Shown in pieces: positions 24,020 through 56,010 of a stretch of 64,000 nt of DNA. The notes under the pieces were generated by a model. It searched no databases. It was not told the DNA's origin and was given only the letters and a program-made list of their open reading frames with translations. Origin of the DNA: Zootoca vivipara (Eukaryota); assembly GCF_963506605.1 (NCBI RefSeq), contig NC_083277.1:3906001-3970000 (forward strand), given 5' to 3'. Each line of letters opens with the position of its first letter. The first letter of the stretch is position 1. The position numbers were made by a program, and so were the translations under genes.

Positions 24020-27000
24020 ATGGCCTCAGGTTCACAGCCGGGATTGTCTCTTCCTTGGGGTGAAGTTGAAAGAGCTTCCCAGCAGCCACCTCAGGTAAGG
24101 GAGGAAGAATCCAAGAGAGTGATGGGAGTTTCCTGGGTGCCTCTCTCTGTGTGGAGAGGCAAGGGAGACTGAAAAAATATCCCTCTTTTATTCTTTCCCT
24201 TTTTTTATATATACTTCTGGCCCAGCAAAAGTGGCTGTGATGGGGACTGATAGATAAATGAAAGCACATATGCAGCTATCATGTCTCCTTACATGCTTGG
24301 GCAATGGTGGAATGAATTCTACTCCTTTGTCCAGGGCCTGGTGACCTTTGAGGACGTAACTGTGTTCTTCGAGGCAGAGGAATGGGCCCTACTGGATCCG
24401 GGCCAAAAAGCTTTGCATAGGGAAGTCATGGAAGAGAATTACGAGACTGTGGCCTCTCTAGGTAAGCCCTGCTTCTTTTTTCATTCGATAATAGATGTCT
24501 AAGGAATTAATTTAGTAGCCCCCCTCCATATGTCCTTGCAATTGAGCCCTTTTCTGATGTTATTGAGCAGTTAAACGCAATTGCACTTTCTATTCCATTT
24601 GCTGCTTCAAAGGTTTGAGCTCGTATACTGCTCCAGATTTAGCGGGTGCATGTCCCATTTTTGTTTAGTCGTCTTAGTCATGTTTGACTCTCCGTGACCC
24701 CATGAACCAGAGCATGACTTGGAAACTCTCACTTTCTTCTCAGAGTTTTCTTGGCAAAATACTAGAGTGGTTTGCCAGTTCCTTCTCCAGGCGGATCACA
24801 TTTAGTCTAAACTCTCGGCTATGACCTGTCCGTCTTGGGTGGCCCTGCACGGCATAGCTCATAGCTTCTTGGAGTTATTCAAGCCACTTTGCCACAACAA
24901 GGCAGTGATCCGTGAAGGGAGCATGCTAAAATCCTGCAACTTTTCGTTCTGCAAATGTTCTGGGCTTTTTGCTTACTCTCACTTTTGTTGTGCTATAGGT
25001 GCAAAAGCATCTAAGCAAATGGACCCACTTCATTAACTAGCAGGAAGTTCGAGCTTTTAGGCCACACCGGCAGACTTCTGTGGATGCCACATGACAAATT
25101 TCTTCATTTTCCACAGCGAGCGGAATCCAACATCCCTGTGGTTTTTGTCCTGTGAATCAGCAAGCATAGCATGATCTCATACCAAAATAAAAAAAAAATT
25201 AGTTGGTCTTTAAGGTGCTGCTGGAAGGATTTTTTAAATTTTGTTTTCACAACAACTTAAATACAGTATTCAGCAACTGTTTTAGCTGTTTTTAATTTGT
25301 GTGGGTTTCGTTTGTTTTCATTGAGGGAGGGGAGGTGTGGCTGGGATAATAATAAGATTTTTTTATTTGTACCCCGCCCATAATAATAATAATAATAATA
25401 ATAATAATAATAATAATAATAATAATTTATTATTTATACCCCGCCCACTCTGGGCGGCTTCCAACAAAACATTAAAATACAGAAATCAAACATTAAAAGC
25501 TTCCCTAAACAGGGCTGCCTTGAGATGCCGTCCAAAGGTCTGGTAATTGTTCTCTTTGACCTCGGTGCCACTGCCAAGAAGGCCCTCTGCCTGGTTCCCT
25601 GTAACTTGGCTTCTCGTAGCGAGGGAACCGCCAGAAGGCCCTCGGCACTGGACCTCAGTGTCTGGGCAGAACGGTGGGGGTGGAGACGCTCCTTCAGGTA
25701 TACTGGGTATACATCTGACCGGGTTGCTCCAGCCACTCTGGACAGCTTCCAGCATATACAGAAACATAATAAAACATTGAACATTAAAAACTTCCCAATA
25801 CAGGGCGGCCTTCAAATGTTTTCTAAAAGTTGTATACTGTAGTTCTTTATCTCAACATCTGATGGGAGGGCGTTCCACACTGCAGGTGTGACTACCGAAA
25901 AGGCCCTTTGCCTGGTTCCCTGTAACCTCACTTCTCGCAGTAAGGGAACCGCCAGAAGGCCCTCAGTGCTCCATCTCAGTGTCTGGGCTGAATGATGGGG
26001 GTGGAGATGCTCCTTCAGGGATACATGGGCGCAAAGGAATAATGAGCACACTCCTGTTCGTTCCTTTGCAAGCCCAGCTTATGTTCACTGTATTTTTAAA
26101 ATGTGGAAACGGCTAAAACAGCTGTGGAGCTTCTCCAACTCTCCCTAGGAAATGGAAGCGTTTTGCACCTCAGCACGTTTCCGCAAAGACATCCTTTTTT
26201 TAACCTGGGGAGAACAGTGGTTTAGGGTGGGGGAAGGATGATGTGGGAGGCAGGGCAAGCTGGGTAAGGGGCACGTGGCACAGACAGTGACTGTATGGTG
26301 TGCCAGCAAAACATTGGGTCTTTCAGTTGTCCTGCCAGCCAGCCTTCAGGTCTGTGGCTGATGTTGCTGAATACCAGGTCAGTTCTGAATATGACCTCCT
26401 TCATTCCTGATCTGATTGTGGATTAGGAGGCTGATCTGGTCTACATCACAGAGACCTGGGTGGGTGAGCAGGATGGACTTGGCCTCATCCAACGGTCCCC
26501 ACTTGTTGCAGCATCCGGGCAGACATGAGGGTTGGGCAGGGGTAGTTTCTATGGCTCATCTCACTCTCCAGAATCTCTGTCCGGTTGGCTGGCTTTGGAA
26601 TAGCTGGATATTTTGTGGCGAGTAAGTAGAATCGGACATAATTGGTCCCCTGTGTTTCCTTCAAAGTCTCAGACCTCAATTCCTGTTGGGAAGAAGGAGA
26701 AGATCCACTTCTCCGGCGCCCTAGAGAAGAGGAGGTATCAATAGGTGAGTGCTTAGCTGTCTTGTGGGGCTCCTTTTGGTCTGGGTATTGAAATATTTTT
26801 GTTCAGTGACTTTGAAAGAGGCTTAAGTAAATTCAGGGAATGTAGAGCTGCCCATGGCTTTTAGCCAAGATGGCTATATATCAAATATCTCTGAAACTGG
26901 GAAGAGCAGGAGGAGAGGGCTCTTAACTCTATGTCCTAGTGGGATCCCCATAAGAATCAAGTTGGCTTATGTGGGGATGCGGAACAAGACAAGCCTTATA

Positions 27001-54400: not shown

Positions 54401-56010
54401 ATTTCATTGTGGAGGAGACGGTGCCCCTCCAGCTGGTGGACAAGCCGTCCTTCATCGAGTTTGCTCGCCTCGGCCTCGGCAAGGAGCTGTCGATCATGTC
54501 TTCCAAGACTCTGAAAGAGAGGCTAGAAAAGAAGGCCTACCACATGCGGGAGGAGGCAGCCATGAAAATGGCACAGGTGCAGCACGTGGCTACCACTGCG
54601 GACTGCTGGACGCATGGAAGGAAGACCTACCTCGGGGTTACGGCCCACTGGATCAACCCGGAGAGCCTAACTCGGGAGTGTTGCGCCCTGGCCTGCCGGC
54701 GCCTGAAAGGACCCCACGCCTACGACCTCGCCACCACTCTGCACAACATCCACGTGGAGTACAAAATCCACCACAAGGTGGTATGCACCACCACGGACAA
54801 CGGCTGTAACCTGGTCAAAGCCTTCCGAGCTCTCTACACAGACAGGGAGGCGGTGGATGTCATGGACCAAGCCGACGAAGGGGACAACGACCAGCAGGAA
54901 GTGGAGTTTGTGGATGTCTGTAACCTTCTGGACACGGGTGAGTACAGAGCTGCTGAAGAAGAAATGTGCTTGCCCCCACACCAAAGGTGCGCAAGCTACA
55001 CGCTGAACTTGGTGGCCACGCAAGACATCGAGAGAGTCCTCAACTCTAAGAATTCTCCTCTGGGCGGTTTCAAGAAACACTTTTGCTCCTTGCTGGGGAA
55101 GTGTTCTAAGCTGTGGTCCAAACAAAGGCAGTCAGCGATTACCGCAGAGTACATCAAAGACCAGTGCGGTGTCTTGCTCAGGGTCCCCAATAAGACCAGG
55201 TGGAGTACCACCTACGATGCTCTGAAGCAGCTAAGGGATCTACTGTCCGCCGCACCGCAGAAGATGGATTCCATCCTGGACTTCTGCTCCTTGCAGAGGA
55301 TCACAGCTCCCGAGGCCCAGGTTGTCCAAGAATATTGCGAGATCCTCGCTCCTGTGGCCCAGGCCCTCGATATCCTTCAAAAGGAAAACGGTATGTTTAT
55401 GGGCTATCTGCTCCCGACTCTCTATGCTCTGGACCATAAGTTGGAGGTGCTGGAGAAGAAGCCTGCAAATTGCAGCTACTGCCGCCCTCTGGTGAAGATT
55501 GTGCGGGAAGGGATAAGGAGAAGGTTTGAGCCAATTTGGAAGGAGAGGAAGCTGTTGGTGGCTGCATGCTTGCACCCTCGGTTCAAAGTGGACTGGCTGG
55601 ATCTGTGCAACACTGAGATCGGCAAAAGTACCATGGAAGCGTTGCTGAGAGCCGAGATTCAGAGGGTGGTCACAGAGCAGGTCAAGAGCTCTTCGGAGAG
55701 GGCATGCACCGCTGACTGCGACGACGAGTTTTTCGGCATACAGTCCCGAAGCAAGAAGTCTGCATCGGACTCTGCCGAAGAGGAGGTCTCGAGGTACCTG
55801 AAGTTCCCCAACAGCGAGCTGTCTTCGCTCCACGCCTTCCCGCAGATTTTGAAAAGCTTCCTTGCATACAACACGGGCCTGCCTTCGAGCGCCGCTGCTG
55901 AGCGCCTCTTTGGCGCAGCTGGGAACGCAATGACCGTGAAAAGACATTCTCTGGCGGACGACATGTTTGAGCACCTGGTGCTTCTGAAGCAGAACAAAGG
56001 CGTGGTTTGA
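45475..56010 (+). CDS. G5 KRAB-hAT transposase fusion (KRAB-A + two KRAB-B-like exons + BED finger + hAT/ZBED-type transposase), ~826 aa; exons 45475-45627 (tentative), 46224-46350, 49485-49562, 52361(or 52331)-52444, 53467-53711, 54217-56010
   Basis: GT-AG introns with matching phases (0,1,1,1,0). BED finger CKFC...TSNLKRHLQ|KQH is completed across the intron. hAT motifs [21 protein letters not shown]. No C2H2 exon lies between KRAB and transposase. Confidence 0.85.
46224..46350 (+). CDS. G5 KRAB-A exon
   Basis: 127 bp; [42 protein letters not shown]|G. Confidence 0.93.
51277..52203 (+). mobile_element. Penelope-like element with GIY-YIG endonuclease remnant between inverted pLTRs
   Basis: ORF 51491-51925 contains [21 protein letters not shown]; 51311-51520 is an inverted copy of 51990-52203; hammerhead motifs at 51370-51407 (-) and 52105-52142 (+). 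Confidence 0.9.
52620..53240 (-). mobile_element. L1-like LINE 3' fragment
   Basis: Decayed ORF2 C-terminus (PEIFLLG...W..F..Y). Similar fragment at 29227-29460. Confidence 0.65.
53467..53711 (+). CDS. G5 BED zinc-finger exon
   Basis: Acceptor cttacag| (phase 1), donor cag|gtaggt; PW..F...VQCKFCLPK...[10 protein letters not shown]. Confidence 0.88.
54217..56010 (+). CDS. hAT (ZBED-type) transposase-derived terminal exon of G5
   Basis: Acceptor ctcttttcttttccag|; in frame with the 566-aa ORF 54310-56010; LHPRFK and hATC motifs. Confidence 0.93.
   Translation, partial: KQHPEQLRVLEAAKRKNTKKHDFSEAEDASGLRPPKMPATLERWGSSREPVSQKLLDKKLLDFIVEETVPLQLVDKPSFIEFARLGLGKELSIMSSKTLKERLEKKAYHMREEAAMKMAQVQHVATTADCWTHGRKTYLGVTAHWINPESLTRECCALACRRLKGPHAYDLATTLHNIHVEYKIHHKVVCTTTDNGCNLVKAFRALYTDREAVDVMDQADEGDNDQQEVEFVDVCNLLDTGEYRAAEEEMCLPPHQRCASYTLNLVATQDIERVLNSKNSPLGGFKKHFCSLLGKCSKLWSKQRQSAITAEYIKDQCGVLLRVPNKTRWSTTYDALKQLRDLLSAAPQKMDSILDFCSLQRITAPEAQVVQEYCEILAPVAQALDILQKENGMFMGYLLPTLYALDHKLEVLEKKPANCSYCRPLVKIVREGIRRRFEPIWKERKLLVAACLHPRFKVDWLDLCNTEIGKSTMEALLRAEIQRVVTEQVKSSSERACTADCDDEFFGIQSRSKKSASDSAEEEVSRYLKFPNSELSSLHAFPQILKSFLAYNTGLPSSAAAERLFGAAGNAMTVKRHSLADDMFEHLVLLKQNKGVV

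Follow-up and report, generated by a model that had tools for sequence, protein, structure and literature searches.

The 64-kb stretch of the Zootoca vivipara genome analysed here (hereafter, the window; all coordinates are positions in it, as matched to the RefSeq assembly, and it contains no runs of N) carries a cluster of KRAB zinc-finger genes in which two genes, G3 and G5, have KRAB exons joined to a hAT transposase. Four KRAB-A exons, all on the forward (+) strand, are found at 14176, 24335, 39355 and 46224, and downstream of those at 24335 (G3) and 46224 (G5) there are long open exons (31246–33090 and 54217–56010, respectively) and no finger arrays. We regard it as probable that G3 and G5 are two separate, conserved lacertid fusions of KRAB to a nearly complete, immobilised hAT transposase, with the origins and mode of action proposed below. 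In each gene, the transposase part appears to comprise a zinc finger, an RNase-H-like core with an insertion domain and a C-terminal dimerisation region. A preliminary description of this stretch, made from its letters alone, had claimed that the KRAB exons of both genes are joined in frame to a hAT transposase, and this is borne out: all exon borders of G3 and G5 are AG/GT and in frame, and the joined exons yield the RefSeq proteins exactly. The joined models served only to check the frame and the identity to RefSeq, whereas the database searches were run with single exons or database proteins.

The exons of both genes lie on the forward strand. G3 opens with an ATG and 25 codons before a GT donor (exon 1, 24020–24094), followed by a KRAB-A exon of 127 nucleotides (nt) between AG and GT (24335–24461; Pfam KRAB, E = 5e-21) and a KRAB-B-type exon (26667–26744) that resembles those of G5 and G2, a neighbouring gene of the cluster. 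Next come a 434-nt middle exon (27280–27713), apparently the former linker part of a zinc-finger exon and needed for the exact RefSeq match, then an exon with the first part of a TTF/C17orf113-type finger (28908–29066; Pfam zf-C17orf113, E = 2e-4 on the exon alone), which aligns with the N-terminal finger of its relatives, and finally the transposase core exon (31246–33090; 614 codons and a stop). The translation of this set is identical to RefSeq XP_034963257 (P0144; 905 amino acids), annotated as 'zinc finger protein 862-like'. The junction 26744/28837 given in the preliminary description had to be abandoned: RefSeq and the spliced contigs give 26744 to 27280–27713 to 28908–29066 to 31246, and the earlier version lacks the 434-nt exon, with an acceptor that falls 71 nt upstream of the true one. 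Within the middle exon (at 27315–27617), an 87-nt coding unit that contains IVK[S/T/G]E motifs is repeated about four times, and the length of this tract differs among lacertids.

The X1 isoform of G5 consists of exon 1 (45520–45627), a KRAB-A exon (46224–46350; Pfam KRAB, E = 6e-23) with 84% DNA identity to that of G2, a KRAB-B exon of the cluster type (49485–49562; 67% amino-acid identity to the G3 KRAB-B and required for the exact RefSeq match), a second KRAB-B-like exon (52361–52444), which is bounded by AG and GT, in frame and the same in all lacertid orthologues, a BED-finger exon (53467–53711), the finger of which is finished in the next exon, and the transposase core exon (54217–56010; 597 codons and a stop). 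Its translation equals RefSeq XP_034963279.2 (P0141; 811 amino acids; LOC118081150, 'uncharacterized protein') without a single difference, and that of isoform X2, which begins with an alternative first exon (48197–48272) and skips KRAB-A, equals the 758-amino-acid RefSeq protein P0138. The junction 52444/53467 proposed earlier for G5 agrees with RefSeq, whereas the first exon at 45520–45627 and the KRAB-B exon at 49485–49562 had been missed. Both fusions are already predicted in gene databases, where they are unnamed or misnamed.

The predicted structures of the two cores, with predicted local distance difference test scores of 88 for G3 and 77 for G5, both have chains of the Hermes transposase as top matches in the PDB (E = 6e-11 and template modelling score of 0.63–0.69 for G3; E = 1.4e-13 and 0.65–0.69 for G5), the matches extending over about 590 columns, and the C-terminus of G5 also matches Hermes in a phmmer search (E = 8e-6). 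The Pfam scores for hAT and BED are below threshold on single exons. With Dimer_Tnp_hAT, G3 (19.7 bits) and G5 (15.3 bits) fall short of the cut-off of 21.4, which their relatives exceed, and zf-BED reaches 23.4 bits (cut-off 20.6) on the whole G5 protein, where the match spans the exon joint. In both genes the finger is split by an intron, at 29066/31246 for the TTF-type finger of G3 and at 53711/54217 for the BED finger of G5. BLASTP detected no similarity between the G3 and G5 cores, and a comparison of profile against profile aligned them over 545 columns at 15% identity and 97.6% probability, with the catalytic motifs in register. Judged from these comparisons, the cores belong to two distant hAT subfamilies with only remote homology, in agreement with the earlier proposal that the two transposases are of different types, given that zf-C17orf113 (TTF-like) is found in G3 and zf-BED in G5.

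In the family alignment, the first catalytic Asp of G3 is kept (D121 in ADGSTD, 31606–31608), as is the Glu (E549 in CERG, 32890–32892), and the CxxH motif (31891–31902) is intact. The second, near-invariant Asp, however, is replaced by Asn (N188 in SFNGASV, 31807–31809) in Zootoca, Lacerta and Podarcis alike, while it is kept in the lacertid paralogue of G3 and in all aligned transposon relatives. Catalytic competence of G3 therefore appears doubtful, and the protein would be expected to bind DNA and not to cut it. In G5, the corresponding residues are D129 (54601–54603), D194 (54796–54798) and E562 (55900–55902), and the CxxH motif (54988–54999) reads CASY in Zootoca and P. raffonei versus CASH in Lacerta and Rhineura.

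Neither transposase open reading frame (ORF) has the surroundings of a transposon. No plausible terminal inverted repeats were found beside the ORF of G3 or G5, the sole long inverted repeats being fragments of a long interspersed nuclear element (LINE); the transcript contigs indicate a single transcript-level copy; and an exhaustive HMMER search with the G3 transposase recovered one lacertid paralogue, at 69–70% identity, and nothing else above 51%. A mobile hAT element, with terminal repeats, 8-bp target-site duplications and many copies, was considered as an identity for these ORFs and rejected on the lack of inverted repeats, the single transcript-level copy and the one diverged paralogue. 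The preliminary description had named a multi-copy transposon with terminal inverted repeats as the finding that would speak against its proposal; what we found is that no such repeats flank either ORF and that G3 has one diverged paralogue.

Full-length orthologues of both genes are present in Lacerta agilis, Podarcis muralis, P. raffonei and P. lilfordi, and in every species for which the contig is recorded (Zootoca, Lacerta, P. raffonei and P. lilfordi) G3 and G5 lie together on one chromosome-size contig. Compared with the other lacertids, G3 differs in 2.4% of amino acids in KRAB-A, 0–3.8% in the finger exon and 3.3–4.1% in the core, versus 4–24% in exon 1, 11–19% in KRAB-B and 14–16%, with insertions and deletions, in the middle exon, the fastest segment. 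G5 is exactly 811 amino acids long in four species; among lacertids, its second B-like and BED exons change by 0–1% (0–1 amino acid in the BED exon) and the core by about 3%. Furthermore, the G5 core is 75% identical to that of the amphisbaenian Rhineura (P0060), with no stops, which, across so deep a split, we can explain only by sustained constraint. For the G3 core, comparison with the contig of a related lacertid shows 59 differences in 1355 nt, and the four known orthologues differ at 13–20 of 451 codons; the first 451 core codons comprise 1055 non-synonymous and 298 synonymous sites, and some 46 non-synonymous changes would be expected under neutrality. The resulting ratio of non-synonymous to synonymous change (omega) of about 0.1–0.15 is a rough count. 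The selection on the transposase exons for which the preliminary description had suggested a check is thus suggested by a deficit of amino-acid changes in the G3 core in this rough count.

The KRAB exons relate both genes to their neighbour G2. The KRAB-A exons of G2, G3 and G5 share 80–84% DNA identity over about 137 nt (80–81% for G3 against G2 and G5, 84% for G5 against G2), with the similarity ending at the exon borders and the introns unlike, and their KRAB-B exons are 71–82% identical in DNA. The close resemblance to G2 asserted earlier accordingly holds at the level of the exons but does not extend into the introns, and judging by these identities, the KRAB exons of the three genes represent a single KRAB subfamily rather than recent copies.

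For G3, an origin within the cluster can be traced in the gene itself. A relic consisting of two C2H2 fingers (27762–27914, forward strand), broken in translation by a frameshift and stops, is present in the intron directly behind the donor at 27713. With blastn it aligns at 72–78% DNA identity with the arrays of G1, G2 and G4; outside these three arrays, no other finger-like sequence was found in the window. The middle exon has its acceptor within an SPPSDDEP motif, similar to SPSDDGQ near the start of the reading frame of the G4 finger exon. The relic behind the donor suggests that G3 is a former KRAB zinc-finger gene of the cluster, the linker exon of which is now spliced into a transposase. 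An origin of G3 within the cluster, with its finger array exchanged for a transposase, is supported by these sequence features, and the local origin from a cluster paralogue that the preliminary description had proposed on the strength of the KRAB exons is upheld by the decayed fingers. In the scenario that we favour, the linker exon of a KRAB zinc-finger gene would have begun to splice into a TTF-finger hAT copy downstream, after which the bypassed finger array would have decayed inside the newly formed intron.

The source of the G3 transposase is not the one that its database name implies. The tree of transposases places G3 and its paralogue among uncharacterised transposases encoded on short public contigs, in one clade with 100% support, whereas bat ZNF862, the core of which is 27% identical to that of G3, forms a separate clade with a KRAB-bearing protein of the cordylid lizard Hemicordylus (100% support). 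Forcing G3 and ZNF862 together worsened the fit by 172 log-likelihood units (approximately unbiased (AU) test, p = 1.5e-69, for a grouping chosen after the tree had been seen), and G3 was rejected as an orthologue of ZNF862. With the ZNF862 lineage rejected, G3 appears to be an independent fusion for which 'ZNF862-like' is a label of similarity only; on the tree, the name is an error that hides an independent origin. Of the earlier characterisation of G3 as 'TTF-finger/ZNF862-like', the first half stands and the second, as a statement of lineage, does not. No orthologues of G3 from outside the Lacertidae were among the hits of the homologue search. The paralogue (P0004, P0005 and P0006 from Lacerta and Podarcis, on another chromosome; 69% identity) bears the database name 'nucleolar complex protein 2 homolog isoform', with the N-terminal exons of NOC2L joined at the same acceptor position, and may be a second host–transposase fusion. 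The Hemicordylus capensis protein (P0187) carries KRAB, C2H2 fingers, a C17orf113-type finger and a hAT core, and groups with bat ZNF862 (P0228) at 55% identity and 100% support, so that the ZNF862 lineage may be older than the 'Mammalia' date given in Table S3 of Cosby et al.

The history of G5 appears to have been different. All squamate BED-hAT members form one clade (100% support), sister to hAT transposases from aphids and metagenomes, within which G5 groups with Rhineura P0060 (99% support). The remaining subclades each contain orthologues from several iguanians; some of these proteins have SCAN, others two BED fingers or a divergent KRAB that follows a leader of about 135 amino acids, and in others no host domain is recognised. 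Rhineura P0060 starts inside KRAB-A (MAENYETVDSL) and then shows the same succession as G5, from KRAB-B through the second B-like exon to the BED finger, a layout which implies that the fusion of KRAB to BED-hAT is older than the split between lacertids and amphisbaenians. The existence of an old squamate BED-hAT family with KRAB, SCAN or neither argues against a fresh local capture of the G5 transposase, and no finger relic was found near G5 by blastn or tblastn. From sequence, an old domesticated gene that changed its partners is a better fit for G5 than a fresh capture in the cluster: the BED-hAT part would stem from a domestication in early squamates and would since have acquired KRAB or SCAN exons as partners time and again. 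The nearest non-squamate kin of the family (P0079–P0087) are aphid and metagenome hAT transposases at 40–46% identity, with copies from fish and turtles more distant, which hints at horizontal transfer as the route by which the ancestral BED-hAT element was acquired.

How G5 came by its present KRAB exons is a question on which we are nearly evenly divided. Under one account, to which we give slightly less than an even chance, a domesticated BED-hAT gene, perhaps with another KRAB, gained KRAB-A and KRAB-B exons of the cluster type, through either duplication or exon shuffling, and kept the older exon at 52361–52444. Such a gain would be consistent with the monophyly of a squamate family that includes KRAB, SCAN and double-BED members, with the lack of a finger relic near G5 and with the distribution of KRAB, since the KRAB-bearing members do not form one clade (joining the G5 clade with the iguanian KRAB clade was rejected; AU p = 0.0002). 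G5 moreover has two B-box-like exons, the second of which resembles the motif of Rhineura P0060 and of the iguanian KRAB-bearing paralogues, and a second Rhineura paralogue (P0062), which belongs to another subclade, shares the KRAB tail of P0060. The motif match is short, however, and B boxes are alike in general; a single early KRAB fusion followed by replacement of partners fits equally well. The local origin claimed for G5 is therefore supported only in part: its transposase belongs to an old squamate family, lacks an accompanying finger relic and occurs in the same layout in Rhineura. The idea of the cluster as a repeated transposase trap is accordingly borne out by G3, with its finger relic, and left undecided for G5.

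Transcript evidence was gathered for positions 26600–32599, that is, for G3 from KRAB-B into the core exon. A spliced contig from a related lacertid (X6, 3978 nt) runs from KRAB-B into the middle exon and, via 27713/28908 and 29065/31245, into the core, in frame and with GT..AG borders, and extends about 535 nt upstream of position 27323; an in-frame KRAB-to-transposase transcript of G3 exists in a close relative of Zootoca. From Zootoca vivipara itself, a spliced contig (X1, 3072 nt) joins 29066/31246 as in the model, and raw RNA-seq reads (X23 and X24), nearly all in + sense and at a depth of about 1–4, cover the KRAB-B, middle, finger and core exons, with none on unique G3 intron sequence in this interval. 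The join between KRAB-A and KRAB-B of G3 is taken from the RefSeq model.

Taken together, we propose that the finger and core of each transposase would provide sequence-specific DNA binding and oligomerisation, whereas KRAB would recruit the TRIM28/KAP1 silencing machinery. By analogy with other KRAB–transposase fusions, the G3 and G5 proteins would then act as sequence-specific repressors, a function that we infer for both.

Several points weigh against this interpretation. The sole same-species contig, X1, uses a donor at 27684 (GT at 27685), 29 nt short of 27713, so that KRAB and the transposase are in different frames and translation stops after 251 amino acids; this isoform may be regulatory or unproductive. 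The spliced RNA that the preliminary description had sought across the G3 joins is accordingly divided, in frame in the relative and out of frame in the one contig from Zootoca. For G5, the exon joins are those predicted by the RefSeq models, and RefSeq also predicts the isoform that lacks KRAB-A. The omega of the G3 core is a rough estimate, and the full set of catalytic Asp, Asp and Glu (DDE) residues in G5 makes a catalytic role conceivable. The Pfam KRAB consensus reads LYR, MLE and DV; the KRAB-A boxes of the two genes have LHR and MEE, and that of G5 has EV, deviations which mean that binding of TRIM28 is not assured.

Some of these points would also be expected if the fusions were mostly constructs of annotation, the parts being co-transcribed and the products a short KRAB-only protein, a separate transposase-derived protein or both. 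The out-of-frame donor of X1, the X2 isoform of G5 and a raw-read depth too low for counting junctions are all compatible with this account. Nevertheless, we find it unlikely, because the contig of the relative is spliced from the in-frame donor 27713, the models of five lacertids keep the frame across all exons, with G5 at a constant length in four of them, and KRAB-A, with about 2% change, is as conserved as the transposase core. A different view of G5, which we hold to be quite unlikely, starts from its complete DDE under purifying selection, owing to which it may retain cleavage or strand-transfer activity: the squamate BED-hAT family would be a portable DNA-binding cassette, combined in evolution with effector modules as different as two unrelated types of KRAB, SCAN and an additional BED finger, and G5 would be a domesticated recombinase with KRAB-regulated or KRAB-targeted cleavage or strand transfer rather than a plain repressor. 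That the ORF of G3, G5 or both is a still-mobile or newly immobilised hAT element in the introns of KRAB genes, evolving neutrally, is very improbable despite the three catalytic residues of G5 and the full length of both ORFs, considering that there are no terminal inverted repeats and one transcript-level copy of each, that G3 has a single paralogue at 69%, that the fingers are interrupted by introns, that full-length orthologous ORFs occur in several genera (for G5 also in Rhineura, at 75% and without stops), that amino-acid changes are in deficit, and that G3 has exchanged Asp for Asn and two G5 orthologues have lost the His of CxxH. We thus retain the interpretation of G3 and G5 as separate, immobilised KRAB–hAT fusions.

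The remainder of the window is composed of neighbouring genes and repeats. C2H2 finger arrays were located by a finger search at 2–1291 (reverse strand), 18835–19599 and 40815–41600. Three of the four KRAB-A exons are intact (Pfam KRAB, E = 5e-21 to 6e-23), whereas the one upstream of the G4 finger array (39355–39486) contains an in-frame stop, and G4, the 'ordinary' neighbour, may be a pseudogene or use another start. Fragments of a LINE family, each with a reverse transcriptase (RT) tail, are found within the genes and near them, at 29496–30579, 33807–34244, 39786–40276 and 46487–46848, and are common in the RNA runs; two inverted LINE copies lie on either side of the G3 core exon. Short interspersed repeats at 27000–27199 and 31000–31199 have very deep read coverage in every run, the latter lying immediately 5' of the G3 core exon's acceptor. 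At the end of the window there is a Ty3/gypsy retrotransposon (59885–64000), which may be young; its gag (418 codons) is open, as is its pol, which encodes protease, RT, RNase H and integrase in more than 1000 codons and continues beyond the window.

New vertebrate transcription factors are known to arise by fusion of KRAB to a transposase. In a preprint (10.1101/2020.05.07.082677), Cosby et al. reported 94 fusion events, 32 of them with KRAB, and four KRAB–transposase proteins that repress reporters through their cognate terminal inverted repeats. The definition of a host–transposase fusion used by these authors, a transposase domain in frame with a host domain in one gene model, describes both G3 and G5. 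Their Table S3 includes ZNF862 (Mammalia), KHATD1 (turtles) and KHATD2 (Anolis carolinensis), and its sole lacertid entry is TIGD-G11, a mariner element with SCAN, with no lacertid hAT fusion (10.1101/2020.05.07.082677). G3 and G5 add lacertid cases from outside this catalogue, from which they are probably absent because their hAT domains score below the Pfam thresholds; our literature search found no paper describing lacertid G3 or G5.

Among known systems, ZNF862 has the same order of parts as G3, namely, KRAB, a C17orf113/TTF-type finger and a hAT core with a C-terminal dimerisation region, which in G3 is putative. G3 differs from it in being found only in the Lacertidae, in carrying the relic of a finger array, in its clade and in a core identity of only 27%. 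KHATD2 of Anolis, with a TTF finger, and KHATD1 of turtles, with BED fingers, are reptile KRAB–hAT fusions like G3 and G5, but, according to the catalogue entries, they stem from other lineages and separate events. For G5, the nearest likeness in architecture is to the vertebrate ZBED proteins, which have likewise been described as combining a BED finger with a hAT-derived core in the absence of transposon ends (PMC3606216). The closest kin of G5, however, are paralogues confined to squamates, and next in order come hAT transposases from aphids and metagenomes; no vertebrate ZBED1–9 protein was among the hits of the G5 homologue search. KRAB, present in G5, is to our knowledge absent from ZBED proteins. 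With the KRAB zinc-finger family, both genes share the KRAB-A box and lack the tandem C2H2 array, of which G3 keeps the intronic two-finger relic and G5 nothing.

A system similar to G3 in the manner of its origin is KRABINER of bats, which likewise arose when the KRAB exons of a zinc-finger gene were spliced to a transposase. KRABINER has been demonstrated by experiment to be a sequence-specific repressor (10.1101/2020.05.07.082677). Its transposase is a mariner and not a hAT, and the parental zinc-finger isoform has been retained there, whereas in G3 the parental array has decayed and the fusion alone remains. G3 is accordingly an unusually clear snapshot of the process, with the decayed remains of the discarded finger array still present in the intron made by the domain swap, and the G5 family, in which one domesticated transposase lineage has been combined with several host effector domains across squamates, should be useful for studying the re-use of DNA-binding modules.

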